From contig CM060734.1 of the NCBI GenBank assembly GCA_030704615.1, forward strand, positions 63,116,001 to 63,180,000: a stretch of 64,000 bases of DNA, in the 5' to 3' direction. Each line of letters opens with the position of its first letter. Positions within the stretch are counted from its first letter, which is position 1. Position numbers and translations under genes: made by a program. Positions 14,070 to 55,400 of this stretch are shown here, in pieces. The notes beneath the pieces were generated by a model that was given only the letters and a program-made list of their open reading frames with translations, did not search any database and was not told where the DNA came from. The stretch comes from Takakia lepidozioides. Its lineage: Eukaryota; Plantae; Bryophyta.

Positions 14070-17000
14070 ATGGCGGAAAATGTCTTTACTTTATGCAAAG
14101 AGACTATAGATTTAGCCCAGTACCTCGTGGCAACTGAGAAAGATTTGCAGATCAACAAGCAGCAGTGTAAGCTTCTGGCAAAGAAGCTCTCAGGAACCCA
14201 CGAAACATTAGACACGATCCGAGAAATCTTATTTGAAGAAGCGTGCCGCGGGCAATTTCGTGGTGCAAAACACTGGGAGCTGGTCATCAAGGAGCTCTAT
14301 CGTGTACTGAAGGCTGCCGAGGCACTGATCAAGGATTGTTGCTGTAATAATCGGTGGCTGAAGGTAGCGATCAGGCAAGGCGACAAGAAGCAAGATTTTG
14401 CGGAATTGCTCTATGACATAGATTGGTGCACTTCTGTTCTGTGTAGCAGTTTTCTCCAGCCAACCAGTCAAGAGACAGGCTACTTTGACGCAGGAGCATG
14501 CGAGGGTAACCTCGGTATCACAGAGTATTATGCTCTGGAGGCAGCAGCAAAGGATGACCAAGACTGCCTCAAGGCCTCTCTAAAGCACTTGAAGGGCGAT
14601 CATGTTTGCATGGAGGGCTGCAAGCACCTCAACCAAACTGAGCAGTGCCTTGCAGCGCAGCTGTTGGGGAGATTGCAAGCCCCGGTCTTGCCAATTAATA
14701 GCAGCGAAGTTGGTACCTCGCCGCTCATTTTGTGGGCGAATCCTGGAGAGCTCACTGATGGAATTAAGTTAGGAGAAGGTTCGACGGTGAAGGTGTATGA
14801 AACTATGTGGGGAGGAGAAAAGTACGCAAAGAAAAAAAGCTCGGATAGCTCTTTGTTCAAGCAAGAGGTGGCTACTCTGGCAGGGATTGATCATCCCCAC
14901 ATTATGCGGCTAGTTTGCTGCTCTCAAAGCAAGCGAGACATCCTCCTGATGGAATTGATGGCCACGGACCTCCATGCCCTCTTGCACGCCAGACCCCGCC
15001 CGTTTCCGAATCTTGAAGCCGTTGACCTCATGCTGCAAATCGCCGAGGGGATAAAATATTTGCACGCCAGAAGCACCGCCCACCGTAATATAAAATCTTT
15101 GAACATTCTTGTCAGATGTGCAAATCTTCCAGCTTGTCTAGGAGAAGACGCCCGCGTGTACGCGAAGATAGGTGGATTTGGCTTGTCGAGAGTCACACAT
15201 TCGAAAACTAGATACTCAGCGCAAACACACTATATAGGTACCAGACAGTGGATGGCACCGGAGGTTTTCAGTATGGAGGATAACGAAGATCTTCCTACCA
15301 GGTTGCAACCTCTGAAAGCAGATGTTTACAGTTTTGCGATTGTCTGTGCCGAGATATTGACAGGAGAGGAGCCATTTGGGGGGAATACATATGGGCTTGG
15401 GAGGAGGGTGAGGAGGGGGGAGAGGCCAAAGTTGTCGGAGAGTTGCCCAAACAGGTTGGCTTACTTGATTAAAAAATGTTGGGATGGTGACCACCTCCGG
15501 AGACCAGATTTCTCAGAGATTTGCAGAGAGCTAAGATATATCAAAGGCCTCCTTCTGAAAGGTTAGTGACGCCCATGTTGTGAACATTGCTTTCAGCACC
15601 AGAAATGATACTACGCAAGCTTTCTTGATGGACAGTTCCGTCACAATGGAGTCCCGAGATGCTAACATCAGTGAAAATAGTAAGGGAATCTGTGAAACAC
15701 AAAACAATCCTCTCGACCTCATCTTCTTCAACATACGATTTTACATTAGTTGTGACTCACAGAAATGCAATTCGAGGAAGAGATTATTGTGGAATTTGAA
15801 GGCTTTGATAACTGTTCATGAGAACCTTATCACTTCTAGGTCAAAATCTTTGCACGAGGTAACCTCTTCCTTCCGATGGAATGATCAACCTTAAAGGAGT
15901 GACAATCGAGACCTTGATTGTCTATCGTGAACATAGGGCTATTGATTAAATTGCTAAAGTGAGTCGCCCCTCTGATACAAATTCTGGATTCTACAGATGA
16001 TGAAGTGCAGCTGGAGAAACTGGATGCAGATGCTTTTCAAAACAAAGCAATTCAAGTAGGTGAAGACTATGTACATTCATTTTCTTTTTCGGACTCCCCA
16101 CATAGAAGCATAGACAGCAGACGGGAGTTATATTCATGGAACTTTGTCTTGAGTATATTTGCATTGTGCACTTAAGATAAATGGCCAGATAAAATGGCCA
16201 GGTTAGAAGATATGTCTGGAATTTTTCTGATGCATTTCAATTGCATTTTCAGTTTTCCCACTTTCTGCACCTTCTCAACTTCATCATTGTTCCCGCTTTT
16301 GTTGTGCATATGTATCATCATATCACTGAGTTCTGTATATGTGTTTATTAACCTCCCTCCTTGCGTATAGTGCCTCTGCACCCAAGGAAAATCTGGATAT
16401 TTTCAATCTAGATCAAATTTGAAGAAAAGTTATGGATTGGTACAACTGTGTTGTATGCACTTTACCTCTGCTTTTTACAATTCGATAGAATCATTATCAC
16501 AATGGAAATGTTTCGAGAAATGTTTCAAACAGAAATTTCTATGCACCAAACCCCCCCAAAAGAAAAACACACAAGCTTTGAAGTATAACATTGATATCTG
16601 GGTTCTGGCGTTGTGTGTTGTATATCATCAGGTACAAGGACCTTGGGGAGGTATAGGTGGAAGTCCTTTCTTTGATGGTATCACTACATCCATCAGAGGG
16701 TTTCAGCTCAAATTTGACAAGCCCCCACAGGCTCCCTGCATATGGTATCTTGAGGTGCAGTATGAGGTCAATGGAGTATCGTTCCAGTCATATCATGGTC
16801 TATCCAACTATGGGGCAAAATCTACTGAGGTTTGACTTTAACTCCTCCCTTCAATTTTCTAACAAGGTGTCTAACAAGCATGCTAAGCTACCATTCACCT
16901 TCCTCATTGACAAAAACCAACTGCCTTATGTGACATTGTTCAGTTCCATCTCATTTTTCAACTCTCATCTGGTTTTGGAAGTTATTGCTTATTACTGTGT

Positions 17001-17561
17001 TTATTAATTCATTCTCTTTTCTTTATTATACAAGTAGGTGAGTTACATCAGAGTTTCCACATGTTTTCAGTGTGTCTGTTTGCAAATTTTAGCAACATTT
17101 TGTTCTAGCCTATGCAGGTAAGGCATGAACAAAACCTGTAATTGTATGTGTAAAGGGTGTTATTTGTCTACATGTGCATATAGTGATTCAATCATCAGAT
17201 AGATTCTTTGTCTGCACCATTTAATTGTGGAAAGAGCACTTGTCAAGCCTGATATCTTCGTGCTTGAGTCTAGCTGACAGACTGCGTTTCATTGATTTCT
17301 GTCCAGATTTCATTCTCCTCCGAGGAATTCCTCGAGCAAATTGAAGGTTCATTTGGCTTTCAACCTGTTTATGTGGGATCCGACAAAGTTACAGGCATCA
17401 CTTCTCTGACATTTCGCACCAATCTAAACACCTATGGACCATTTGGTGGTGAAGGGGATACCCAATTCAAGACAAATCCAGGAAGGGTAGTGGGTTTGTT
17501 TGGGAGATGTGGCCTGAGTCTTGATCAACTTGGAGCATTTATCGTCCAAGATGAGACTTGA
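14070..17561 (+). CDS. N-terminal helical bundle (MLKL/MCAfunc/DUF1221-like) + Raf/TKL-type pseudokinase + C-terminal jacalin lectin; exons 14070-15561, 15997-16055, 16632-16829, 17307-17561 (667 aa)
   Basis: All introns GT-AG with consistent phases (1,0,0); 2004 nt open. N-terminus INKQQCKLLAKKL..ELYRVLKAAEALIKDCC..WLKVAI. Kinase GEGSTVKVY, YAKK, HRNIKSLN, KIGGFGLS, WMAPE, KADVYSF. Jacalin GPWGGIGGSPFFD..ITSLTFRTNLNTYGPFG..VVGLFGRCGLSLDQLG. Confidence 0.88.
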
Positions 17562-21989: not shown

Positions 21990-22846
21990 TTTCTTAAACA
22001 AGTCAATCCAAAAATGACTTGTGAACTTTGAGTACGGCCTTTCACCCAGAAACAGATGCCCAAACAGAAAGGACCAACCATACAATTGAAGATATGTTGA
22101 GAATGTACTTTGGTGAAAGACAGTCCTCTTGGGAACAATATTTGTATATGGTGGAATTTGCTTATAACAAGCATTTCCACAGTGCCATTGGCATGAGCCC
22201 ATTTGAAGCTTTATATTGACGAGATTGCTTAGCTCCTGCTTCGCTTATCACACCACCATCAAATGTGCAAAGCGTGAATGACAGAATCAAAGAGATCCAC
22301 TCTGTCCTAGATCTGGTGAAGCGTAGTATGCAGGCTGCACAAGAACGGGCCAAGTTCTTTGCTGATAAGCGTAGGACTTTTCGTGAATTTGCCATTGGTG
22401 ATATGGTGTTTTTGAAAGTTACACCTAAAAGAAGCAACCTAACACTAGGCAAGTGTTATAAATTGTCACCAAGATTTTGTGGTCCGTTTAAAATCCTGGA
22501 ACGTCATGGCACAGTGGCCTATGAGTTGGATCTGCCTCCAACATGGAAGATCCATAAAACTTTCCATGTCAGTCTTCTTCGGAGGTATATGTCGGACTCA
22601 TCACACATCTTGCCGACGTTGCCTCAAGCCATGAATGATGGTCAGCTGATGGCTGAACCCGAAAAGATTCTAGAAACGCGGGTAAAGCACCTGTGCAACC
22701 GTTCTTGGAAAGAACATTTGATTAAGTGGTTGCATTACCCAGAGACAGAAGCTACTTGGGAGAAGGAAAATGAATTGACATTGAGTTACCCCTCATTTTC
22801 TGTCATTGAGGACAATGACCTGTCTTTGGGAGGGGGAGTTTGTTAG
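21990..22846 (+). mobile_element. Chromovirus-type Ty3/gypsy integrase C-terminus + chromodomain (5'-truncated)
   Basis: STAFHPETDAQTERTN, EFAYN..HSAIGMSPFEALY, KLSPRFCGPF (GPF/Y motif), chromodomain PEKIL..EHLIKW..PETEATWE; in-frame stop at 22217; polypurine tract GGGAGGGGGAG at ~22828-22838. Confidence 0.92.
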
Positions 22847-23482: not shown

Positions 23483-24017
23483 AGTGGTATCAGTTATGTG
23501 GAATGACCTACAGTATAGGCAGTAAAATACTCCACACCCACACCAAGAGTTGCTCATTAGTGTACTCATTTCAAATCTAGATAATAGTGAAAACTTTGTG
23601 CAAGCTCATGACTGGACTATTTTCTACGGACAAGGCCAACCCCCGGAAGTGGGCAGTAACTGAAAGGCTAAGTGGCACTTAGTTACACTGGCCATGGCCA
23701 ACGTCTTCTCTATGTGGGGACAATGTTCAACCATAACTGACTGCAACACAAGAAGAGGAACCAAAACCTCAGGATTTTGTGGCCATTAACCTCCTCTTCA
23801 TTACATCTCTGTCCATCCCTCTTTAAGATTGTATGAAGAAGAGCACTGTTGAGAGGACAATCTCATACATATATGATGCCCTCGTCATTTTCACTGATGT
23901 TAATATCATGGGACTCTAGGTTAAACTGAACTATTTGTTATGCAAGCTTGTATAGTGCTAGTACTTATCTAGTTCTGAAAGCAATGCTCACAGGAACTGA
24001 AGATGGCAGTCACTAAC

Positions 24018-25526
24018 CTCTCAGAAGGAGTTCTTTGATGTATCTCAGCTTTCTGCAAATCTGTAAGAAATCAGGTCTCCGGAGAGGGTTGCCATCCCAA
24101 CAGTTTTTAATCAAGAAAGCTAACCTGGCTGGACAACTCTCCGGCAGCTTTGGCCTCTCACCCCCCTTCACCCTCTTCTGAATTCTATATAAGTCGTTCG
24201 CAAATGGCTCCTCTCCTGTCAGTATCTCAGCACATACAATCCCAAAACTATAAACATCTGTTTTCAGAGGGTAAAACCTGGTAGGATGATTTTCTAAGTC
24301 ATCCTCCACACTGAAAACCTCCGGCGCCTTCCATTGTCTGGTACCTACATCCGGTGTTTGATTTGAGTACCTGGTACTCTCATTCTTGATCTTTGACAAT
24401 CCGAAATCACCTACCTTTGCGTACAGGTGCCTGTCTTCTCCTAGACAAGCTGGAAGTTCTACGGATCTGACCAGAATGTTCAGAGACTTGAGATCACGGT
24501 GAGCAATGCTTCTAGCGTGCAAATATTTCATCCCCTCGGCAATTTGCAGCATGAGGTCAACTGCTCGAAGGTTCGAAAATGGCGTAGATTTTTCATGCAA
24601 GAGGGCATGGAGGTCCTTGTCCATCAATTCCATCAGGAGGGTGTCACGCTTGCCTTGAGAGCAGCAAACTAGCCGCATAATGTGGGGATGGTCGAGTCCT
24701 GCTAGAGCAGCCACCTCGTCCTTGAACATTGAGCTCTTTGTGCCTATGAATTTCTTCTTCGCGTACTTTTCTCCTCGCCACACAGTTTCATACACCTTCC
24801 CCATCGAACCTTCTCCTAAGTAAATTCCTTTATCAAGCTCTTCAGCGTTCGCCCACAAAATGAGTGGAGATGTATCCACGTCCCTTCAGTTGAGTGGCAA
24901 GGCTTGGGCTAATTGCAATCTCCCCAACAACTGCATTGCAAGACATTGCTCAGTTTGGTTGAGTTGCTTGCAGCTCCCCATGCAAACATGATCGGCCCTC
25001 AGGCTCTTCAAGGAGGCCTTGAGGCTGTCTTGGTCGTACTTTGCCGCTGCCTCCAGAGTGAAGGAATCAGTGATGCTGAGTTGCCCTTCGCACCCTCGTG
25101 CATCAATGTAGGAGCGCGTCTCTTTAGAGGTCCGCTTGAAAAAAATGCCGCACAGAATTGAAGTACACCAGTCTACATCGTGTAGCAACTCCGCAAAATC
25201 TTGCTTCTTGTCACCACACCTAATCGCTGCATCCAGCCACCGACCATTGCAGCAGCAATCCTTGATCAGTGCCTCGGCAGCCTTTAGTATGCGACAAAGC
25301 TCTTTCATGGCCTGCTCCCAGTCATTTGCATCATGAGAACTATTTGCACTTGCTTCTTCATCAGATAAGAGTTCCCGGATCTGTCTAATGTTGCTTGGAT
25401 TCCCGATAGTCTCTTTGCCAGAAACTTACACTGTTGCTTGTTGATCTGCAAATCTTTCTCGGTTGACGTGAGGTACTGGGCTGAATCTATAGTCTCTTTG
25501 CATAAAGTCAGAACATTTTCCGCCAT
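24018..25526 (-). pseudogene. Paralog of the 14070 gene, exon 1 only (helical bundle + catalytically intact kinase motifs), disrupted
   Basis: MAENVLTLCKETID.. start; 1-nt frameshift at ~25381; in-frame TGA at 24886-24888; GEGSMGKVY, HRDLKSLN, DFG, APE intact; same G|GTTAGT donor; intron homology continues to ~23880. Confidence 0.88.
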
Positions 25527-25710
25527 GGATTCTGTTCTCAAGTGCATTGAGCCGATAACTACCTAGAAGGCATGCTGCGATAGAACAAATGGCTACGAGA
25601 TAATTACAATCTGAGAAGAAGAGTTGGGAACGGCCAATTCACGGTGCTGATAGCTGCGAATGCCACAACTCAAAGAGACGGATTCTTCCCACTCCATCAC
25701 GGGCACCCTC

Positions 25711-27806: not shown

Positions 27807-30547
27807 GCATCCCTCCTCCATTCATCCATGTCGAAAAGTAAGGTGAGAATGAATCCCAGCTCCACATATGTGAAGCATGTTGGGGCCACAAGAAATTGCG
27901 AGCTCCTGCGAGTGATGAGCTCAGGAAGAACAAAAATGAAGCCTAGCCAAATCAAACTACACACCCGACACACAACGGATGAAAAAACCTAGGGAAGAAA
28001 ACCTCACCCTGCAAGCTGGGTGGAGGACAAAATGTTCCATAGGAAAAACCCCAAGTGCTACAATTGGTGCAGAAAACTAGCACGAAATTCAAACACTAGT
28101 CTAAAGAAGAGGATGCCATGTTTTGAGGGCGAGCTCTCCGAGCTGTGGGGGTGAAAATCACCTGATGGTTCTCAACATTCACAAAGGTTAGATCAAAAGT
28201 AAGAGTGCATGGAATAAACAATGATACATGAATGGAGCTAGCTAAGTGAGGAGTAGAGGCATGTTGGGGGAGCAAGACATACTATCTGCCATGAAGAATA
28301 TCAAAGATAAGATAAGGGCCATCAATTCTTCGTTTGGTCTTGGAAATCTGCTTACCAGGCTGGAGCCTCACACAAACAGACTGGCCTACCTTGAATGACT
28401 CAGAATACACAACACGACGGTTGTAATTCTTGGCCTGAGCAGCTTGGGCAAACACAATGTTAGATTTTGCAGTTTCACGCAAACTACGTCGTCTAGCATC
28501 CATGGAAAGCAAAAATACTTCCCAATTTTTAGGCTCAGTAGCCGAGACCTGTAGCCAGGAGATATGCAAAGGAGTTCTACATTTCCTACCATACAAAAGT
28601 TCAAAAGGTGAGATCTTGGTACTGGCACGGATAGAAGTCCTGTAGGCAAAGAGCAGAATAGACACAGCAATATCCCATTCATCAATGAGTGCCCCATTCT
28701 TCTCGAGCATCTGACATATAGTTTTGTTAAATCGTTCTGTCAAACCATTGTATTGGGGATTGTAAGGAGCAGTAACGGCATGCTTAGTGTTGAGATTAAA
28801 CAAGACAATCTCCATAAGTTGGTTGCAGAACTGTGTACCTTGATCCGTGAGGATTTCCAGAGGGCAACCATGACGAAGAATCACCTTATCAAAGAAGAAC
28901 TGCTCCACCTCATCCCTATCCTTAGCAACCAGAGGTCGGAGCTCAACCCATTTCGTCAGGTAGTCCGTTGCAACCGTAAGGTGTGTATGGCTCTTGGACG
29001 TGGATTTAAGGGGTCCGACTAGATCTAAGCCAACCCTGGCAAATGGTTCAGTCACCAGGATTGGCTGTAGAGGTAAGGGAGCTTCGGTTCTAGGTATGAG
29101 GTTTTAGCTTGACATGGAAGCTGAGACATCTTTAACTAAGCATTTCCAGTGATATTGCTCATGTAATCTCTTGACAGTTTTAGCAACCCCCAAATGGCCA
29201 GCATAAGTAGAAGCATGATACAATTCGAGCAAAGCAGGGACAACGGACCTAGAAGGGACTTCCACAACAGATGTACCTTCCAAAGCAATGACTCTGCACA
29301 ATCTCCCTTCATTTTCCCGGTGGCTGGGTAAGTGATAGATGACTTGCCTCATGAGCAGCTTGGATATGCCACTAAGGTGGGTGCCGATTTTGCACCTATG
29401 GAGAAAAACATCGTATAATGGATCATCCATGCCTACATCACTCATGGCCACACAATAACAGGTTAGTGCATGCGAGAAGAAAGTGGCAGCCCTCGTTCTC
29501 TTCTTTTCGTAATCTTGACTTCATTTTCAGTTGGCTGCCTATGAGGAGGCAAGCAGGCTGTAAGGCTCAGCTCAGTCCCTTGGTCAGGAAACAAACCAAG
29601 GCAGACGCAAGACAAGATGAGCAGTTCTGAGGTAAGGGAAAGTACCAGACTCGTCTGCATGATACCAGACCAGAATTTATGCCAGTACCAGGGGAAAGTC
29701 AACCAACATCAAATTGAAGAAGATCCCAAGTGTCAAGCAAATCTGGAGGCACATAAGGATAGTCCATCAAATGACATAAGACATAGGGATCTGAAACAGG
29801 CTCAGCAGGTGATGGAGATCGTGCAGCAGGGGAGACTAGATCATTTAAGGTAGTGTAAGGTGCAGGGATTTTGGATTCGTCTCGAGTCAAAGCATCTGCA
29901 TTAACGTTATCCTTCCCACGCTTGTAGGAGATGGTAAAGTCATAGCCTTGCAGAATGAGAGCCCACCGAGCTAATCTGCCAGTGAGTTCATGAGGGGTTA
30001 GCAAGGCTTTTAAAGATAGATGATCAGTTTCAATGGTAAAATGACAGCCATGTAAATACTGCCGAAAATATTTGACTCCAAAGATAACTGCAATGCCTTC
30101 CTTGTCAGTGATAGAGTAATTGCACTCATGTTTATCAAGGCGGCGAGAGGCGTATGCGATGGCATGCTCCTGACCATCTTGAATCTGGCTCAACACAACA
30201 GAGATAGCTTGCAGGCATCAGTTTGCAAGATAAATGACAAGGTAAAATCAGGATAAGCAAGCACATGAGCAGAGGTTAAGTGCAATTTTGAGCTTCTCAA
30301 ATGCGGACGTTTCAGCAGTACCCCATACAAAACGAGTATCCTTGGATAACAAGTGAGCGAGTGGAGCAGCTAGTTTGGCAAACTGAAAGATGAAGCGACG
30401 ATAGTAAGAACCCAAGCCTAAGAAGGCTTTAACGCATGTTTTATCCTGAGGGGCTGGATAGTTCCACACAGCTTGGATCTTAGCAGGGTCAGGACTGATG
30501 CCAGCAGCAGAAAACAGATGGCCCAAGAAAATGAGTTGTTGGGCAGT

Positions 30548-36713: not shown

Positions 36714-37691
36714 GTGACAAGTGGTCGCGGGTTAATGTCAAAAGAATGGCCGGTGAGTGTAAAGACAATTTGGAAGTCAAACTCAGAGAATGTGCCACGC
36801 GGACAGAGGGAGACGGGAGAATGTTTGAATTCAAACACGTGGCCTAAGGGGCGAAGCACTCCGCATTGCATGTACTGCAATAGCAGGTGTCAACATGCAA
36901 GAAAACAAATAGAGCCGTCAAAGTACCTACCCAATATCTCAGCCGAAAATAATTATGGACCCATTAATGCATTCAGGGCAAGGGTAACGGAACCCTGTAC
37001 GAATACAGAAAAGGGTTATCTTTGCCACATGTGCTATCCTAGTGGACATTCCAGGGGGGAAAGTTCACTAAAGGAAATTAAATTAAAAAGTTACTCAAAG
37101 AGGCAACAGCCAATCACGAGCCACAATTACCTGCAGAGGGTATCCTCCAAGAAACAAGATCAAGAATTAAAAAAAAAATTGAGCGGAAGAGTAGGGGTCG
37201 TTCCGAATAACGGGCGTCTCGACATGAGAGACAATCAAAGCTATAGCTTTGAAGCTATGGCGGAAATAACAGACTACACGCTCGCCTTATTACTTACGCA
37301 GTGGCACGAGAACGGACGAACTGAGAGTACATTTTTTCTCAATCGATACTTGCAAGCCCCGCAGGCTTACAAGCATTTACGCATTTCATTCTGTGCCAAC
37401 CACACTTTTATGCTCTGTGCCCTGCAGGCGTTTCTTCAGTTGTTGCAAACAAAACCTTTCTGTTTGTCTAGAATGAAGAGAGTGAGAGGAATGGAAGATA
37501 TCAGGGTGAAGAGTACCACAATACTACAGAAGCAAACGATTGCTACACCACAGGCAGTTCAGCTACTGAGGGAGCTGCGATTGGAGGGGCTGCTACGCAA
37601 GGATTGGTCATTGCATCATCGGCAATACATGCTGCAATTTCTGCAAAACTTTGAGCCTAAGACGGGAGTAACCCAGGTGAAACCGTTCTAA
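36714..37691 (+). CDS. Extra ORF downstream of gypsy pol (retrotransposon accessory ORF, probably truncated)
   Basis: 325-codon ORF in sense orientation just after the integrase and a CACAGCC-rich spacer; only the C-terminal part looks clearly coding. Confidence 0.4.
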   Translation: MTSGRGLMSKEWPVSVKTIWKSNSENVPRGQRETGECLNSNTWPKGRSTPHCMYCNSRCQHARKQIEPSKYLPNISAENNYGPINAFRARVTEPCTNTEKGYLCHMCYPSGHSRGESSLKEIKLKSYSKRQQPITSHNYLQRVSSKKQDQELKKKLSGRVGVVPNNGRLDMRDNQSYSFEAMAEITDYTLALLLTQWHENGRTESTFFLNRYLQAPQAYKHLRISFCANHTFMLCALQAFLQLLQTKPFCLSRMKRVRGMEDIRVKSTTILQKQTIATPQAVQLLRELRLEGLLRKDWSLHHRQYMLQFLQNFEPKTGVTQVKPF

Positions 37692-37867
37692 ATATGTAAG
37701 TGTTCTAGGTCAACATCTTGCACCAGAGGCTTTTTCCTACGCCATGCTGTAGGAATGAATGATCAAATGGCAAGAGAGACCTTGATCTTCCATATTTGGA
37801 CAAACGGTTATTGATGAAACTGACTTCCTCATGTCCTTCTAATGTCTATGAATTCTTGAATATGCAT

Positions 37868-37926
37868 ATGATAAAGTGCAGCTGGAGAAATTGGACAACC
37901 ATGCTTTTCAAAACAAAGCAGTTCAG
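37868..37926 (+). pseudogene. Orphan exon 2 of the kinase-jacalin paralog
   Basis: 59-nt exon DKVQLEKLDNHAFQNKAVQ versus DEVQLEKLDADAFQNKAIQ (15997-16055); acceptor mutated CAG>CAT; flanking intron sequence is homologous to ~15900-16170. Confidence 0.85.
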
Positions 37927-38129
37927 GTTCATAATGACTACAAACATTCTTTGAGTATATTTGCATTGTGTAGTAGTTTGATAAAATCCTTACTTATTGT
38001 TTTTGCGATTTCAAGAGAGTACGTCAGGACCATATTCTGTTGGGGCAAGTCACTTGATTGCCCATTCTTTCCACTTGCATTTTATTGTCATTCCTGCTTT
38101 TGACGAGGTGCATGCCTATATTGGTCAAT

Positions 38130-40857: not shown

Positions 40858-43127
40858 ATGCCTGCATTGTCCCCGGGCTCGAATGGTTCTAGAAGCCCAG
40901 CGAGCTCCGAAGGGGCTCAATCGCCTGTTGTCGGATCACGAAAGGCCTCTTCACCTGCCGAGTCTCCTACATTTCCGACGCCATCTTTGCACATTATGAA
41001 GAGCTCAGTGTATCGTGCAGCCCACGGGGTTCAAAGGATGGGCGCAAGGAATCAGCGGAGAAGAGCAGGGACGCAGATGCCTTCCCCTCCTCCAATGGCT
41101 CGGAAACCTTCTCTCACAATAAAGAGCACCGGCCTTCGTGCGGGAATTTCAGAAAGGGAGCTGGTCGGCTTGAAGGATGGGTGCAAAGAGACAGTCGAAA
41201 AGAAGGAGGCAGATCCCAGGAAAGATCCGGAGGCGCAAGAAGAGAAGAGGTTTGTTGAAAACGATGACGAGGATGAGGTGGGTATTAGGAGTGTGCTAGG
41301 TGAAGCTAGGGCAAAGTTTGCTATGGTCGAGAAAAGAACAATTGACCACTGGAAAGCTGCAGCTGCACAGGCTAAAGCTGCTTCTGCTGAAAAGAAGTTA
41401 GAGGAAAGAGCTCGGCATCTTGAGGAGAAGGTACTAAAGCTGGAAGATGAACTCAGGGACTCAGCAGCCATCGAGGTGGCTTTGTATTCTGTAGTAGCTG
41501 AGCATGGGAGCTCTTCCCATAAGGTTCACACGCCTGCCCGCCGCCTCGCAAGGCTTTACTTACATGCATTCCAGAACTGGAGCCCAGAGAGACGAGCAAG
41601 CTCGGCCTGGAACTCCGTATCCGGATTGATTTTGGTTATACGAGCATGTGGAAATGATATTCCAAGGTTGATGTACTGGTGGTCCAATGTGGTTGTTCTT
41701 AGAGAAACCATCGGTCAGGTGTGTGATGTTGAACTCGCAGCTGCCAGTGCGGAGGCAGAGGGCGGTACTTCCATTAACAGTCCAAATAGCAATGGCTTTG
41801 CTGCTCGAGCATTACGATCCCAACAGCTAAGAAAAAGTCTGTCCTCGAATGACAGCAGCCATTTGTTGATCCCAAACGGATTGAAGAAGGATTGGCGAGA
41901 ATGCAGCACCTTTGTCAGTGCACTTTTGAGCATTGAAGCATGGATTCACGCAAGGGTCTTGGAGTCTGTCTGGTGGCAGGCAATGACCCCCCAATGCAGA
42001 TTGGAGGAATCCTGCCTGTAGGCAACCCTCTCCATGGAGATGCGAAGGAAGAGTGGAACAAGTCTGCAAGTAAGGTCAAGAACGAGTTGGATGAGTGGCC
42101 TGCCGATGGACAAGAACTTTTCGCCAAGGAAAAAGTGGATTCCAACCTTCACAAGCTAGGAGATACCCGCCAGGGAAATATCTCTGTGGAGATATGGAAG
42201 AGGGCTTTCACGGATGCTTTGAAACGCCTTTGTCCTCCTCACGGAGAGGGTCACGAATGTGGCTGCCTCCCAGTGCTAAAGAGAATGATAATTGAAGAGT
42301 GTGTGGAGAGGCTGGACGTTGCTATGTTCAATGGGATTGTGCGCGATCCACAGGATGATTCTCCTACAGAACCCCTTGCAGATCCAATCACCAACATTTT
42401 GGTCCTTCCTATTCCCACTGGGGGCCTTACCTTCGGCGCTGGCTCTCAACTGAAGAATGTGGTAGTGAATTGGTCAACATGGATCTCGGCCCTCGTCAGT
42501 TTCAAAGACCCAAGCATTGCCGAATCCATCAATGGAGATGGCAATGCATCACAGCCTGAGAATGCAGTGGATGAAGAGCCAGTTCGTTTTAGTCTGCTCA
42601 AAGCCACAGGTGATCTTTTGATGCTGCCTAAGGAAATTCTCTTGGACAAAGATATGAGGAAAGAGGTTTGTCCAGGCCTGAGCTTACCCCTGATGCGTCG
42701 AGTCTTGTGTAATTTTGTGCCTGATGAGTTCTCTCCAGATTCTGTGTCACCTGCCCTTTTGGCCGGCATTGATACTGAGTTGTCAATGGAAACCAAAAAA
42801 CAAGGTGAGGCAGACACACACCATGTCATAGCATGTGTGCCTCCAGTGACCTACACCCGACCTTCCTCACATTTAGTCAGGCTGTGGATTGGGGATTCCC
42901 CTGGAGCTTCTCGGTCAGGCTTGAGTACCTCGTCACTTTTGCGGAAGGGATATACCAGTGACGACGAATTGGAGGAATATCAAAATCCCCTTGGGTTGTT
43001 GCAATATAGTCTGGGTAAACCCTATTACAGCAGTGAGTTGCCCATTAATGGGAAAAAAAAAAAGAGGGAAGAGTCCGGGGTTGCCAGGCGCTACCAGCTG
43101 CTTAAGGAGGTGTGGGCAACCCAATGA
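40858..43127 (+). CDS. Plant 'nucleolar protein gar2-related / NT-C2 (EEIG1/EHBP1) family' C-terminal-domain protein, frameshifted at ~41990 (pseudogene or assembly error)
   Basis: LRDSAAIEVALYSVVAEHGSSSHKVHTPARRLARLYLHA, RACGNDIPRLMYWWSN, ESVWWQAMTP, RLCP..HECGCLPVL, RLDVAMFNGI, FGAGSQLKN, DLLMLPKE, RKEVCP, NFVPDEF, LRKGYTSDDELEE, RYQLLKEVW. Two overlapping ORFs join at a C6 run. Confidence 0.8.
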
Positions 43128-49400: not shown

Positions 49401-52400
49401 GGCATAACCCAAAACTTCCCACCCTACAGCCACCAGTATGAAGCTCCATTACTGCGCTGCAAGACACTTAAAAAATAGCCCTGTACTACACTGCTGCTGC
49501 AGCCAAAAGGCTCACCCCTGAAGTGCTTCTGGTCTCTCGCATCCCATGTATGTTCACTCTGAAAACAATCATTTTGACTACAAACCAAGCTTACCTTCAT
49601 TAATGGCCTGTCAACCTCTTCAAGTCCTTCCCATGGCTGTCTATTTGCCGGAAAGTACAACACAGACAACCCACACCTCTGTGGGTCTATTGCTATGTCC
49701 TCCCTAAATGTTCGCCTTCGAGCCTCTGCCTTCATCTCATCTGCCACCATATCCTCATCACTTGTCAGCTTGATTTCTTCGGCTCTTGCTCTCCTCCTCT
49801 TAAGTGCAGCCTCCCCCCACAGATAATCCCTGCCCGCCAAACCAACACATCCTGCACAGGTATTCTTCATTAGAGCAACAAGTTCAGTCAACGCCACAGA
49901 CCAAAAGAGTTATTACGGCCAGCTTCTTGCAACTTAATATCCTTGAGAAAGTGACAGCTTCACTTGCTCCCATGACCTGAACTATGTCATTGCTCAAGGC
50001 TTAAAGCTACAAGTGACTAGCTGGTGAGAAGATGCCCCTTCCATCTACAGAAGCATGTTAGAATCACGAAAGCACTGCTGAATGCTTAGCAAGCTATGTA
50101 TTATTACACCAACTCACAGCAACAACATCCTATCTTCATCCCATGTTGGTTGAGTACATAGAACACTACCTGCCCCACTGTATGCCTCCAGTTCATGCAT
50201 CAGCTCAAAAATTTCAAGATCCACCTTGTTCATTGTGGCACCATATGCTGCCAATAGCAAGGAGATAAGCTCTTCCAATGTTGCTCTCTCTTCTGCTGTC
50301 ATTGCTATGCTACCCGGGCGCATCTTTAGCCAAAAGAGCAACCGCACAAGCTTTACAAGCTGCAACCGCCTCTGCTCAATTCGATCCTGTTCATCATCTC
50401 CAGCCTCTTCCACTGACTTGGTAACAACCTCATCTTCCATATCCTTTTTTGGAGATAATTGTCCATTGGCTCCATCCAGATGAGAGACAAGAGGAGACCC
50501 AACCAACGAGAGAAGAGAGGAAAGCGAAGTCAACATGGTATCCTTCCCAGCATGACCCCCGTGAAGTCTTTGAACTGATCCAGAAGAAAGTATAGAAGGC
50601 ACAAACTGTGAGTGAGCCATCACTAGGTCTAGCACACTTGTAGCAACCTCACTCACAGCAGCAATGGATGCCAGCCCATGGGCACCATGAAACAGACCCA
50701 CAGAGAGGGCTTGCAGTGCCAGCATTGTTGATGCATCCCCAAACCTGTATTTAAGGGCTGTCATTGCAAACATTCGGAGTAGAGAATAGCTTGGGAATCG
50801 AGGTCATCAACTTCAAGCACTGTCGCTATGTCAGTCAAACAAGCCAGCAGATACTCTTCCAGAAACTTTATAACATTTGGTCTCCAGTGATTACTGTGAA
50901 TCGTCGAGATATAACAGGAGTCAGATGCTTGGTATGCAATTGGGTCCCTTGGGTTTGTTTGAAGAGCACTCCCAAAGTAGCAACCAGACTAGCAGCAAAA
51001 CTCATGTTGGCCCCTGACTGTTTCTTCCCCCCTTTCATCTCCATTCCAGGAAACTCACTTGTCCCCTTGGATCCTTCTGTTTGCACCTCTACTAGCTTAT
51101 CATCCAACTGAGGAGAATGGCAGCTCATGAAGAGTTGCTTGATTATGGAAACCTGACTAAACAGCTTAAAAATTTGCAAGCGCAGGTCATGTTCAGAAAC
51201 ATGCTGGAAATGTGCATCTAGCGAGGCAAGGGCCGTGCCGTCCTTGGGCAGCAGATGGCGAATAAGCTTGTCCTGCTTCTTTAGACTGATAGCATGCCAC
51301 GAGAGACAATGGTGCAATAGTTTCATGATTCTCCCACTTGCTGAACGCAAGAAATCGCCCCAAAGGTCATTGCTGATGCCGCAATCTGACAGTCTCAAGA
51401 ACTCCAGTTTGGTTGAGTCAGTCGATCCAATTCCACTATAAGTGTCTATGAACGTGTTCCAATGCTTGAAGTGCTTTGACAGTCGACCCAAGTAAACAAG
51501 TGCCACATGTCTTGCCACATGATTGGTGAGTCTTAATGGAGTTTTGGACAAGTAAACTTCGGCAGGAGGTATTAGAAGCAATAGAACCTCATCTGAAAAA
51601 GGAGCCTCATTCATCTTGTATCTCAGGTGATTATCACTTGATAGCTTAACAGCCAATTCCACATGCGACCCACTCATACCATCAGCCACCCTATCTTTAG
51701 TTCCAGCCACGATCAAATTGCCAAACTCAGCCATGTGAACTGAACTTGCCTGCACTAGAAGCATTGCTATTTCTACTGTTACTTGGCTAGGTTTCACCAC
51801 ACAATATCTGAGAACTTCAACAGGAGTGATACTGACAAGCTGTGAATACTTGCCTACCATGTTGGGAGCTAGCAGGGCAGAGAGCAAGCACAGGTCTCCT
51901 GCTTCCGAAGGCTGTTGCAATGCTAATTCAATGACAGTTTTGAAGATGTCAACCAATGATTGCTGTTCCACTGCACCAAGATCACTGCCACTCCACTTTG
52001 ACCATGTCCAATGTCCTGTTTTTGCCTTCTGTCCTTCATAGAAGAGTTTTGCAAAATAAAGCCCAAACGATGGGTGAGCAAATACTGGTGGAGAGATTTG
52101 TCGCGAAACATGCTTGAGAGGAACAGCCTTTTTTGAAAACAAAGACTGCAAAAGCTCAATGAGGACTTCAGAGTCTGCATAAGGGACTAGCTCTGAGACA
52201 GCAAAGAGGGCAGATAATAAACTGTCACCCCTCGGATCCTGTCCATTTGCACTTCCAAGAAGCTCCATTCGAAATGCAGTGATTGCTCGCGCAATATAAG
52301 GTTGACAAGCAGTAGCAGTCGTTTCTTTGAGATTGTTCAACTGCTGTGCCACTGCAATGGATTTGACATCTCCATCCAAAGACGAAGAGATGTGTAGGAC

Positions 52401-55400
52401 TCTTCTTAGAGTGGTAACTAAGTGGTAATCCAATGGCTGCACAGTTACTTGAGCCACCTCCAGCATTGTTCCAATATCAGTGCCTTCATCAAATGCATTC
52501 CTTTCCCTCTTTCTTCCACTATCTTCCAAATGTCTCTCTTCTACACCAAGACCAAAGGAGGAGCGGGCCTGTGTTCTTTGACACATAAAAAAGTCACTGA
52601 AGACAGGATGGGCCAGCAACTCGCTTATCATCACATTGTACACCTTAAGTTTCTCAAGTGCCATGCCTTGTCTGTTATCTTCTCCACTGCCCACTTGCCA
52701 ACCTTCAGGAGGAAATGCAATCCGCTGCAAAAGTGCAAAACATGTTTCCAGCTGTCCAGTCACATCCAAACCCCTACGAGATAAAGGAGCTAGTCGATAA
52801 ATCCAAGTAAGAATGATACGCCCAGTGAATGACCAATGCGAAATCGGCACTTGAGTGCATGCAGCCTCAAGAACAGCAATCATAGGCTTGGAAGCTAACA
52901 GCTTCCATTCATTGCTGTGCGCAGCTGCTGGAAGCACCACTGAAAATGGAAGACCTCTCAGAAATGCGGCCAACGGAAACAAATCTCCCCCTGGGGATGG
53001 TGGAAAAGAGTTTTGAGACGACTCCCTTTGCTTCAGCAAAACAGAATCAGGTAAACACTCTGTTGTCAACCCTTTTCCTGCTAAATCCTCATTTCGAGGG
53101 CCCCATGCAGCCAACTCTACTGCCCTAGCAAACTCCTCTGGCACTGCATCCGCCACCATGGACAGCAGGCCACAGTGAACTGCACAGAGAACGTGCAGTA
53201 ATGAAAAGTTTCCCTTGAAAACCTTTAAGCACACCCGTGTAACCCTAGAAAAGTTCTGCGCAATTTCATGGGGCGTGCAACATACCAGGGCAGACGTAAA
53301 GGCCAACCTTTCTCCTGCCAGAGCATCACCTTCACTATTCTCACAAGCTTCAAGCACTGCAGCTATTTGCCCAGCATAGGCCCAATTTTGGGCATCTGAC
53401 TTACATATCTCCCAATATGACAAATCTTTGACGGGTTTCAGTATGCTGTGGGCGTGCAATAAGAGAACCTGAAGTGGACCCCACTCACAATGAAATGACT
53501 GAGAGTCTGCCAAACTGGTGGGCAAACCCGAATCAGCTGACAACAGGGCATCAATGATGACTGCCAGAGCTCGTGCATTGGCCTGCATATTGACACTCCC
53601 CAGTTAGCATCAGCTTGGGCTCTTACCAATTGCAAGGTGTGGGAAAGGACTGAACCTTACATAGAACACCCTGTGGTAAAAGTGGGATCAACAAATCTCT
53701 CTGACAAGGTCTTTGACACTGGATAGCAACTCTACGTACTGCACGAAATTCCTGAAAACAAACAAAGTTCTGCATGTGCATAATACCCACCTCATCGCCC
53801 ACCCACATAGAAAATATGAACCATATGCATCTATCAACATGTCTTTACCACTGTAACACTTTAATCCTCTCTAACTTTATTATAGCAGGCGACCACCTCA
53901 AGCTTTTGGCACAGCACTGGTACCTCAAATTCCTAGCTACCTTTGAACGGACACCTTACTTTGTACATTGGGAAAGCACTGTAATGATCTCCGTGTGGGC
54001 CTAATATCTACTGCTAGATCGGACAAGTACTTGCAGTCAAAGTTGTAGAAATACCTGTGTCTGCAGTAAAAGGTTGAGTACACCCGCAACATAAACTGAA
54101 ATCTCTGCTCTTTGAGACAGCTTCAGGCCCTTCGAATCTGCGTGTAGCGCTTGGAGGGTGTGCTCCAAAACACAGACTACAAAAGGCCCAAACTCTGGAG
54201 CCATAACACCTGGAAGAGAATGCTCCACAGGTTGAAAATATCATCTATGTGCACAACACAAAGGGAAGCAGCCACATCTCTATGACCAACTTGAGGTGGC
54301 AGACCTCAATTCCAGCGTTATGGCCTGCAGTTTGGGCAATTTGCAATTGGCCTTCATTTCACATGTGAATAGCTAACTTACAAACTACGTTGCATCTCAA
54401 AGAAGAAGCCTGCAGGCCTGTCCACAAGATAGCAGACAGATGGAAATAAAAAGAACCCCGGATCAGCTTGACTGAAAGAACAAAAAAAGCTGAAAGCTTT
54501 CCTCTCCCTTGAAGTTTGAATGGGAAGTGCCTTAGAAGAAGCAATTTGGCTGATGGAGTATGATTCCATAACCACAACTCCCTGGTGCATGCATGCGTGG
54601 GGATGCTCACCACCCCTGAAAGAATGATGCCCCTTCTTGACTAATGATTCTACCCCTTCAATTTTGCAATGGCAAAGATAAACATGCGCCATGAGCTTAT
54701 CACACCTACTGATTAACTCACCCTGCCCAGAGGAGCCCTCCTCCAGAGTGTCCGCAGCAAGAAGGGAGTGCAATTGGTCCAAGTACTTGTACAGATTCCT
54801 CCCCACAGCCACTACTGCCTCAGAAATAAATTCCACAATCCATTTTAGGGACCCGTAAGGGTGCCGTTCACAGGGCTGTCATTGTTATCAGTTACACCCA
54901 CCCACCAGCGGATGAGATCCAGCCAGACCATGACTTCACGAAAGTTACTTTCAAAGGCCCCTGTGCTGACCATTATTCGAGATGTAAGCAAGTTGGCCTG
55001 GTCTCTCACTTCCCCAAAATTGGAACCGACCATCATCTTTAGAAGGGGAGTCACATGCTTGTATATTTGGCCGGACCCTGCTATGTCTGCATAGCCAAAA
55101 GCAGAGTGTGCTGACGTGGGGCCACAGTCAGGAGCCCCTGTGGACGCTAACAGCAGAGACAAGAAGGCCTTTTGCTGTGCAAAAGACAGTTGTGTTGAAT
55201 TGGGTGGTAGCATTCTGAAAGGGTCGAAGCCTTTGTCAGCAAAAGCCAACGGCAGCACCCTCTACAACAAACACAAAAACAGCATAAAGATTCAGCATCA
55301 GAACATTGCCAACCAAGATCCAAGAAACTGGGACTCGCTATTGCAGGAAGGCAGCAGACAGTGTGGCTAAAGGTGGCATTTTGTGCTGTATGGTGCTGTG

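Follow-up and report, generated by a model that had tools for sequence, protein, structure and literature searches.

Plant MLKLs were described by Mahdi et al. across seed plants as a cluster of DUF1221-kinase proteins with a serine-rich tail (10.1101/681015; PDB 6lba, 6ka4), and cell death or immunity is brought about by the bundles of the Arabidopsis MLKLs (AtMLKLs), Pm13 and R3AK (10.1101/681015; PMC10951266; 10.64898/2026.08.07.743466). Tetramer formation is a further trait of the plant MLKL family. Here, we analyse a stretch of 64,000 nucleotides (nt) from Takakia lepidozioides (assembly GCA_030704615.1, contig CM060734.1, positions 63,116,001 to 63,180,000; hereafter the window, numbered from its first letter), and in particular the gene at 14070-17561 of its forward strand, the focal gene. 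On balance, we read it as an intact gene for a soluble MLKL-type protein of 667 amino acids (aa) with a mannose-type jacalin lectin and a derived pseudokinase, belonging to an ancient family of mosses and lycophytes. The subfamily of plant MLKLs to which it adds a new member is unnamed and uncharacterised, and its proteins are already public as 'hypothetical protein'; in the literature searched, no paper joined MLKL, jacalin and plant, and in Chia et al. 'MLKL' figures in all lineages as one of the NLRtracker classes but is not described.

Arabidopsis MLKL1-3 share with the focal protein a homologous HeLo bundle, a brace and a kinase fold, and provide its best match both part by part and over the whole chain; in both, GFG replaces DFG and catalytic activity is not expected. 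However, the serine-rich tail of the AtMLKLs contains no known domain, whereas the focal protein carries a jacalin lectin there; in alignment their catalytic loop is of the HGD/HGE type instead of HRN; and they are described as a seed-plant family, whereas the clade of the focal gene consists of moss and lycophyte sequences that mostly keep the catalytic residues. Animal MLKL (4btf, 6zvo, 2msv), the executioner of necroptosis, is likewise made of a four-helix bundle (4HB), brace and pseudokinase, and the bundles of the two proteins superimpose with Z 12.5-13.7, about 141 of 144 residues being covered, but their sequences are only marginally similar (Pfam MLKL_N, 19 bits for a cut-off of 27) and animal MLKL has no lectin. 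Animal MLKL is activated through phosphorylation by RIPK3; to our knowledge, the RIPK3/RHIM pathway is absent from plants and no plant RIPK3 is known.

Wheat Pm13 and R3AK are immune proteins composed, like the focal family, of a 4HB and a kinase, with the catalytic residues kept as in most of that family; unlike it, they belong to an MLKL_NTD/Cbl-N-type cluster rather than to DUF1221 and lack a lectin at the C-terminus, and R3AK acts together with a linked NLR. In mosses, the 'Pkn-NLRs' carry at the N-terminus the same bundle-kinase module as the focal protein, with NB-ARC-LRR where the latter has a jacalin; in reviews, that N-terminus is just called a protein kinase (PMC11218826, PMC10952240). 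Finally, the chimeric jacalins of angiosperms (OsJAC1, a dirigent fused to a jacalin-related lectin (JRL), PKc-JRL and NLR-JRL) resemble the focal protein in the fusion of a mannose-type jacalin to an unrelated domain, but differ in the partners and in the domain order, and the kinase-JRL chimeras have been tabulated for eudicots and monocots only, without an MLKL bundle (PMC5536079).

Gene model and domains of the encoded protein

The focal gene is composed of four exons, all on the forward strand, with a reading frame that is open over its 667 codons. Exon 1 (14070-15561; 497 codons plus 1 nt, phase 1) encodes the bundle, the brace and the kinase domain, and was delimited from its open reading frame (ORF) and by tblastn with residues 6-506 of P0001, the closest database protein, which is the 680-aa product of Diphasiastrum complanatum O6H91_23G051300. 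Taken alone, exon 1 is an ORF of 498 codons (14070-15566) closed by the TAG at 15564-15566, which is the codon met on unspliced read-through into intron 1 (15562-15996). Exon 2 (15997-16055) is a linker exon of 59 nt, the translation of which matches the linker of P0001. The jacalin is divided between exon 3 (16632-16829, 198 nt), identified by tblastn, a weak Pfam match and alignment with PDB and family sequences, and exon 4 (17307-17561, with the stop codon at 17559-17561), identified by its Pfam and PDB matches; the motif GPWGGIGG lies at 16638-16661 and GLSLD, the G-x3-D loop, at 17511-17525. All the introns, read from the DNA, are canonical GT-AG, and the splice-site contexts (exon 1 donor AAAG|GTTAGT; exon 2 acceptor TACAG| and donor CAA|GTAGGT; exon 3 CATCAG|...GAG|GTTTGA; exon 4 acceptor TCCAG|) are base for base those of the Diphasiastrum gene, including the exon 1 donor. 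Moreover, tblastn of P0001 recovered exons 1, 3 and 4 at the modelled borders. The intact four-exon ORF proposed in an earlier reading made from the sequence alone (the sequence-only reading) is therefore confirmed by the ORF, the splice sites and the exon homology to P0001. The same reading had seen neither a signal peptide nor a transmembrane segment, and none was found in the focal protein, whose highest 19-residue Kyte-Doolittle mean is 1.27. The focal copy is presumably expressed. For the analyses that follow, the exons were searched and folded one by one, with the codon split at the junction of exons 1 and 2 omitted.

The N-terminal domain (aa 1-128; 14070-14453) is a predicted four-helix bundle of the HeLo/DUF1221 type, with helices at residues 2-22, 30-60, 68-89 and 107-128, and it is followed by a brace (aa 141-216; 14490-14717) delimited by the full-chain alignment to AtMLKL3 (6ka4) and by predicted helices at 150-175 and 191-203. 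Pfam assigns it to DUF1221 with 31-34 bits (31.3 and 34.3; cut-off 25), while MLKL_N scores 16.5-19 bits, under its cut-off of 27. When a profile built from 71 N-terminal regions was compared with the PDB, the sole significant sequence was the HeLo region of AtMLKL2 (residues 24-109, E=1.2e-5). AlphaFold2, run on aa 1-222 with the N-terminal alignment, gave four long helices and two brace helices with a predicted local distance difference test score (pLDDT) of 84 and a predicted template modelling score (pTM) of 0.81. Foldseek placed AtMLKL2, AtMLKL3 and the executioner domain of human MLKL at the top for this model, and in VIA-align the nine best matches were MLKL entries, led by figures such as Z 15.4 for AtMLKL2 (6lba) and Z 13.7 for the human MLKL 4HB (root-mean-square deviation 3.0, 141/144 residues), with unrelated bundles at Z 10 or less. 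The entire product of exon 1 was predicted as a single folded unit (pLDDT 90, pTM 0.92), and its best Foldseek match is the entire chain of AtMLKL3 (6ka4; E=6.4e-18, TMq 0.72, 540 columns), every other match being to the kinase domain alone. Pfam score, profile match and structural matches all agree with the helical, MLKL-like N-terminal domain of the sequence-only reading, and the fold comparison proposed there returned a predicted four-helix bundle with MLKLs in first place. That the likeness to MLKL is homology, beyond mere resemblance, is strongly supported.

The kinase-fold domain (aa 225-497; 14742-15560) is recognized by Pfam as PK_Tyr_Ser-Thr (E=4e-41) and, among PDB sequences, matches AtMLKL2 (6lba) and AtMLKL3 (6ka4) best (E=5.6e-41), followed by Roco4 (5.6e-30), B-Raf (about 1e-25) and RAF1, as for a kinase of the TKL type. 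This second rank of relatives would also suit a protein outside immunity, namely a Raf/TKL-like scaffold acting in development or abiotic stress, the lectin of which would bind endogenous glycoproteins, and many nucleocytoplasmic jacalins are indeed stress-induced, for example 5xfh. We hold such a role to be improbable, in view of an N-terminal domain that is specifically of the MLKL type and of the domains with which the module is combined in mosses (see below).

C-terminal to the kinase, a linker of 20 aa leads into the jacalin, a domain of the beta-prism I type. Pfam, scored per exon, detects Jacalin (PF01419) in exon 4 with 61.6 bits (E=1.4e-16, cut-off 22) and gives exon 3 alone 14.3 bits; together the two exons span the domain, like the jacalin of P0001, which scores 76 bits. 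In the PDB, exon 4 has its best match in the mannose/glucose lectin of Parkia (E=4e-26), in an alignment that includes the sugar loop, other near structures being the lectin domain of OsJAC1 (7ywg), Heltuba and the 'salt stress-induced protein' 5xfh, and exon 3 is nearest to the mannose-specific KM+ and artocarpin. The segments GPWGGIGG and GRCGLSLDQLG correspond in the alignments to GPWGGSGG and GRAGDYLDAIG in the mannose-specific KM+ and Parkia lectins, the sugar-loop Asp being kept, and the GG and G-x3-D loops are also conserved across the jacalins of the family. The alignment to mannose-specific jacalins bears out the earlier description of a jacalin with both mannose-type loops, and by its sequence the lectin would be of the mannose type and may bind glycans.

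Lost catalytic residues and selection on the gene

Three key residues of the kinase are replaced in the focal protein, which is predicted to be catalytically dead. In the motifs GEGSTV (14772-14789), HRN (15081-15089) and GFG (15174-15182), the third Gly of the G-loop is Val (aa 240, 14787-14789, GGG>GTG), the Asp of HRD is Asn (aa 340, 15087-15089, GAT>AAT) and the Asp of DFG is Gly (aa 369, 15174-15176, GAT>GGA, two substitutions). The codons were compared with those of two Diphasiastrum genes and of copy 2, a disrupted paralog in the same window, and a table of motifs in 122 sequences covered the HRD and DFG positions; both confirm the losses first noticed in the sequence. In this table GxGxxG, the beta-3 Lys, the alpha-C Glu, HRD, DFG and APE are kept in nearly all the members, and copy 2 and both Diphasiastrum genes have canonical catalytic motifs. 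Since nearly all the moss and lycophyte relatives keep GxGxxG, Lys, Glu, HRD and DFG, the pseudokinase state is, to judge from the motifs, derived and specific to this copy, in a family of predicted active kinases for the most part. The label of MLKL-like pseudokinase given in the sequence-only reading thus holds for the focal gene but not for its family. In this respect the focal gene parallels the seed-plant MLKLs, which also carry GFG. The change from DFG to GFG appears recurrent, at least three times: in the focal gene, in AtMLKL2 and in Sphagnum fallax P0057 (BDL97_10G049300), a full-length jacalin-bearing protein in which HLN and GFG have arisen by independent loss. The conserved TRYS-QT stretch of the activation loop is retained in the focal gene, and Lys residues of the same loop have changed together with the catalytic site.

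A dead kinase in an open frame may be a maintained pseudokinase or a gene on its way to decay. In the second case, a paralog with an active kinase would recently have lost its function, the locus would be silent and the frame would still be open because of the short time elapsed. Several observations weigh towards decay: the loss of the catalytic Asp, of the Mg-binding Asp and of the G-loop Gly, which nearly all the relatives keep, is also expected in the early decay of an active kinase; the gene lies amid retroelement debris, in surroundings rich in transposable elements, beside a paralog, copy 2, that is demonstrably dead; the protein search found no identical or near-identical entry among public proteins, the best match having 66-68% identity; the ratio of nonsynonymous to synonymous substitution rates (dN/dS) of the jacalin exons against Diphasiastrum is 0.68, not significantly below 1 (p=0.09); and the branch analysis given below is limited to a sample of four lycopod-clade sequences.

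The conserved columns and the substitution pattern point the other way. Among the 92 columns of the family alignment conserved at 90% or more, the focal protein keeps 87 and differs at five (the family median is 2, and P0001 differs at 4), and four of these five lie in the catalytic and activation loops; bundle and brace are conserved to the same degree as in active members, and the jacalin, with 33 of the 41 moss-conserved columns, is no more degraded than that of P0001 (30/41). For exon 1, pairwise dN/dS is 0.30-0.38 and, on the focal terminal branch, 55.5 nonsynonymous changes stand against 42.5 synonymous ones (neutral expectation 3.6:1, binomial p=3e-6), that is a dN/dS of about 0.37. The dN/dS check proposed earlier thus gives a value well below 1 for exon 1 and a non-significant 0.68 for the jacalin exons. 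Furthermore, the open frame, the start and the six splice dinucleotides of the four exons, all intact, would survive a neutral phase (P of 0.05 or more) only up to about 0.012-0.017 substitutions per site, in comparison with a dS of about 0.13 on the focal branch. By rough arithmetic, about 0.3 hits are expected among the roughly nine key catalytic residues in a neutral phase so short, whereas three losses are observed, one of them, in the DFG codon, with two substitutions; and P0057 independently combines HLN and GFG with a full-length protein. A young pseudogene is therefore an unlikely reading. Because of the 87 conserved columns kept and of the dN/dS of about 0.37 on its terminal branch, we consider it quite likely that the focal gene is a maintained pseudokinase rather than a decaying one. 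Accelerated evolution of the focal copy was also considered, the copy having 67 unique residues versus 37 and 47 in the others, and was rejected: its dN/dS is like theirs, and it is the outgroup of the quartet.

An ancient family with interchangeable C-terminal domains

A word-based homolog search retrieved 292 relatives, and the named ones are all from Diphasiastrum, Sphagnum species and Ceratodon; in the best 120 of the 292, a jacalin is present in 16. The order bundle-kinase-jacalin is found in P0001, P0012-14, P0075, P0100 and P0136, among other members, and in an exhaustive profile search the end-to-end three-domain matches among the best 150 (down to about 325 bits) are lycophyte and moss representatives only. 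A word search with the jacalin region of P0001 returned six proteins, mainly angiosperm multi-jacalin lectins, and is insensitive for mapping the distribution. When the annotated models were rebuilt on their genomic loci, four exons were obtained in Diphasiastrum (L001), Ceratodon (L003) and Sphagnum (L004), and in these three loci as in the focal gene exon 2 measures exactly 59 nt, the introns have phases 1/0/0 and one and the same position interrupts the jacalin. Because these genes share one exon plan, the bundle-kinase-jacalin fusion, as far as gene structure tells, predates the split of mosses and vascular plants. The sequence-only reading had compared the jacalin with the integrated sensor domains known from plant immune proteins; the identical introns and the architecture shared with mosses show that here it is no one-off integration but part of an ancient arrangement. 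Two intronless contigs of the transcript type, L005 (Logan ERR6564774, 2430 nt) and L006 (JGI 3300010091, 2350 nt), contain uninterrupted three-domain ORFs; therefore, relatives make a single mRNA for the whole protein.

On the family tree the focal gene falls within a fully supported lycopod clade with the Diphasiastrum genes and copy 2, as the outgroup of this quartet, at a dS of about 0.45-0.5 from Diphasiastrum. A blastn of 60-kb Diphasiastrum flanks against the window matched the gene itself and revealed no shared repeats. A side observation concerns a second Diphasiastrum locus, L002 (CM055103.1, the gene for P0002), the annotated model of which extends over 16.5 kb, includes odd exons upstream and ends in a truncated jacalin. 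Compared with P0001 it has a dN/dS of about 0.85 (1.4 in the kinase part) at a dS of 0.047, so that it may have been duplicated recently and be decaying, or else be mis-annotated.

Jacalin-bearing members are scattered on the tree, a pattern that requires 11 changes. Multiple independent gains of the jacalin were considered and rejected, because the introns are identical across the jacalin-bearing genes. Many 'jacalin-less' entries come from genes that do bear a jacalin, of which they are truncated calls or short isoforms, and the scattered pattern overstates the loss of the domain, since several of the 'short' representatives have jacalin-bearing members in their clusters. In Sphagnum magellanicum CY35_10G074000 (P0132/P0281), isoforms of 561 and 714 aa are identical to the end of exon 2 and the jacalin is present only in the longer one, which suggests that lectin-less forms are produced in a regulated manner in this family.

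In mosses the same module is also joined to other domains. In P0240 of Ceratodon purpureus (KC19_12G109800) the family profile covers positions 24-520 and is followed by NB-ARC, WH and LRR, and hhalign aligns this protein to the N-terminal profile with a probability of 92% (E=6e-7); in the related P0233 the bundle-kinase module is joined to NB-ARC, in P0255 to a GTPase of the IIGP type and in P0044 to a DUF676 alpha/beta-hydrolase. Further C-terminal partners in mosses are Sel1 repeats, DUF7792, GIL1_IRKI_C and tandem kinase domains (P0241, P0245, P0254, P0126/P0127/P0129/P0133/P0150). By Pfam, neither NB-ARC nor LRR occurs in the focal gene or its neighbourhood. These fusions to NB-ARC-LRR, IIGP-type GTPase and hydrolase give indirect support to the reading as an immune sensor and executor, and they speak against the non-immune scaffold considered above: in mosses the module takes the place of the executor domain of an NLR and pairs with GTPase and hydrolase domains typical of immunity, and the family is large and variable, comparable to families of immune genes. 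The design may be modular, with the bundle as executor, the kinase fold as switch and an interchangeable sensor, which in the focal protein would be the lectin.

A moss and clubmoss branch of MLKLs thus emerges that is much older, the module of which is usually predicted to be catalytically competent and is joined to a C-terminal ligand-binding domain or to NB-ARC-LRR. It opens the N-terminus of the moss 'kinase-type' NLRs to reinterpretation as an MLKL-like bundle with its kinase, and it offers a natural pair of active and dead paralogs for the study of the conversion from kinase to pseudokinase, together with a testable hypothesis for the gating of plant executors of the MLKL type.

Proposed mechanism and surroundings of the gene

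In the mechanism that we propose, the bundle would be held inactive against the brace and the kinase fold, as in AtMLKL3, and the kinase fold would act as a conformational switch, for which an active paralog possibly phosphorylates it in trans on the TRYS-QT stretch. The lectin would serve ligand sensing or targeting, with mannose-bearing microbial glycans or glycoproteins, or glycans exposed on damaged membranes, as possible ligands. Release of the bundle would lead to oligomerisation and to a membrane-directed output, either immune or of cell death. The focal protein itself would be unable to phosphorylate, and its activation would occur through a ligand-induced conformational change or through an active paralog. 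A role in cell death and immunity, and with it that of a 'glycan-sensing receptor/executioner', may accordingly be envisaged only as a candidate function of the focal protein.

The dead kinase could also mean that the protein is a regulator or a decoy rather than an executioner, baiting effectors or pairing with active paralogs or NLRs in the manner of pseudokinase decoys and tandem-kinase sensors, with a jacalin devoted to oligomerisation, localisation or protein recognition rather than to the sensing of glycans. Copy 2, with its active-kinase motifs, fits this possibility, as does the change of the activation-loop Lys residues along with the catalytic site; the kinase-fusion proteins of cereals are sensors paired with NLRs (10.64898/2026.08.07.743466), and the lectin domain of OsJAC1 relocates the protein to infection sites (PMC5536079). 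Nevertheless, active members show no greater conservation of bundle and brace than the focal protein does, and the sugar-loop residues are kept; in addition, the predicted fold matches the autoinhibited arrangement of AtMLKL3, which suggests that the executor module has been kept. We regard the regulator or decoy as a tentative alternative to an executor of the MLKL type.

A wider and equally tentative scenario, to be taken as a whole, concerns the ancestral MLKL of land plants. The ancestor would have been an active kinase with a C-terminal lectin and the bundle-kinase cassette a general executor module of immunity, which mosses would have plugged onto jacalin, hydrolase, IIGP-GTPase and NB-ARC-LRR, so that the Pkn-NLRs would be MLKL-NLR fusions. 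The MLKLs of seed plants would have derived from it by loss of the lectin and of the catalytic residues, the focal gene would be an independent and recent replay of the conversion from kinase to pseudokinase, and its product would be a cytosolic, lectin-gated cell-death switch trans-activated by active paralogs.

The surroundings of the gene hold further traces of the family. Copy 2 (23887-25527, reverse strand) comprises exon 1 with only the initial 110 nt of intron 1, was found by blastn (79% over 1643 nt) and is 79-81% identical in nucleotides to the focal gene; its frame is broken by a deletion of 1 nt and by a TGA at 24886-24888, and it lacks jacalin exons but keeps HRD, DFG and GxGxxG. 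It lies tail-to-tail with the focal gene, 6 kb away. In the tree copy 2 is sister to the Diphasiastrum genes, closer to them than the focal copy is; therefore, the focal lineage is the older paralog. An orphan fragment on the forward strand (37851-37952, within a wider stretch of 37688-37952), detached from either copy, resembles exon 2 together with the last part of intron 1, with 77% nucleotide identity to the focal copy and 71-74% to the Diphasiastrum loci, and it is what remains of a rearrangement or of a third copy, since its strand is opposite to that of copy 2. An ORF of 325 aa without a Pfam match (36714-37691) lies just upstream of this fragment.

Retroelement debris with SH3_Tf2-1 and a chromodomain (22265-22846, forward strand) separates the 3' ends of the focal gene and copy 2 and may mark the site where copy 2 lost its downstream exons. 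A Ty3-type integrase/chromodomain fragment lies just past the end of copy 2. A second piece, with an integrase core, lies at 28282-29055 on the reverse strand. The focal gene had been called the only undisrupted protein gene of the region; this needs qualifying, since other long open frames do exist, if without a Pfam match. At 40858-43127 (forward strand), two ORFs of 387 and 395 aa that overlap are without a match, and an uninterrupted ORF of 906 aa at 50868-53588 (reverse strand), also without a Pfam match, yielded weak protein-atlas leads to helical-repeat scaffolds, with scores below 0.9.

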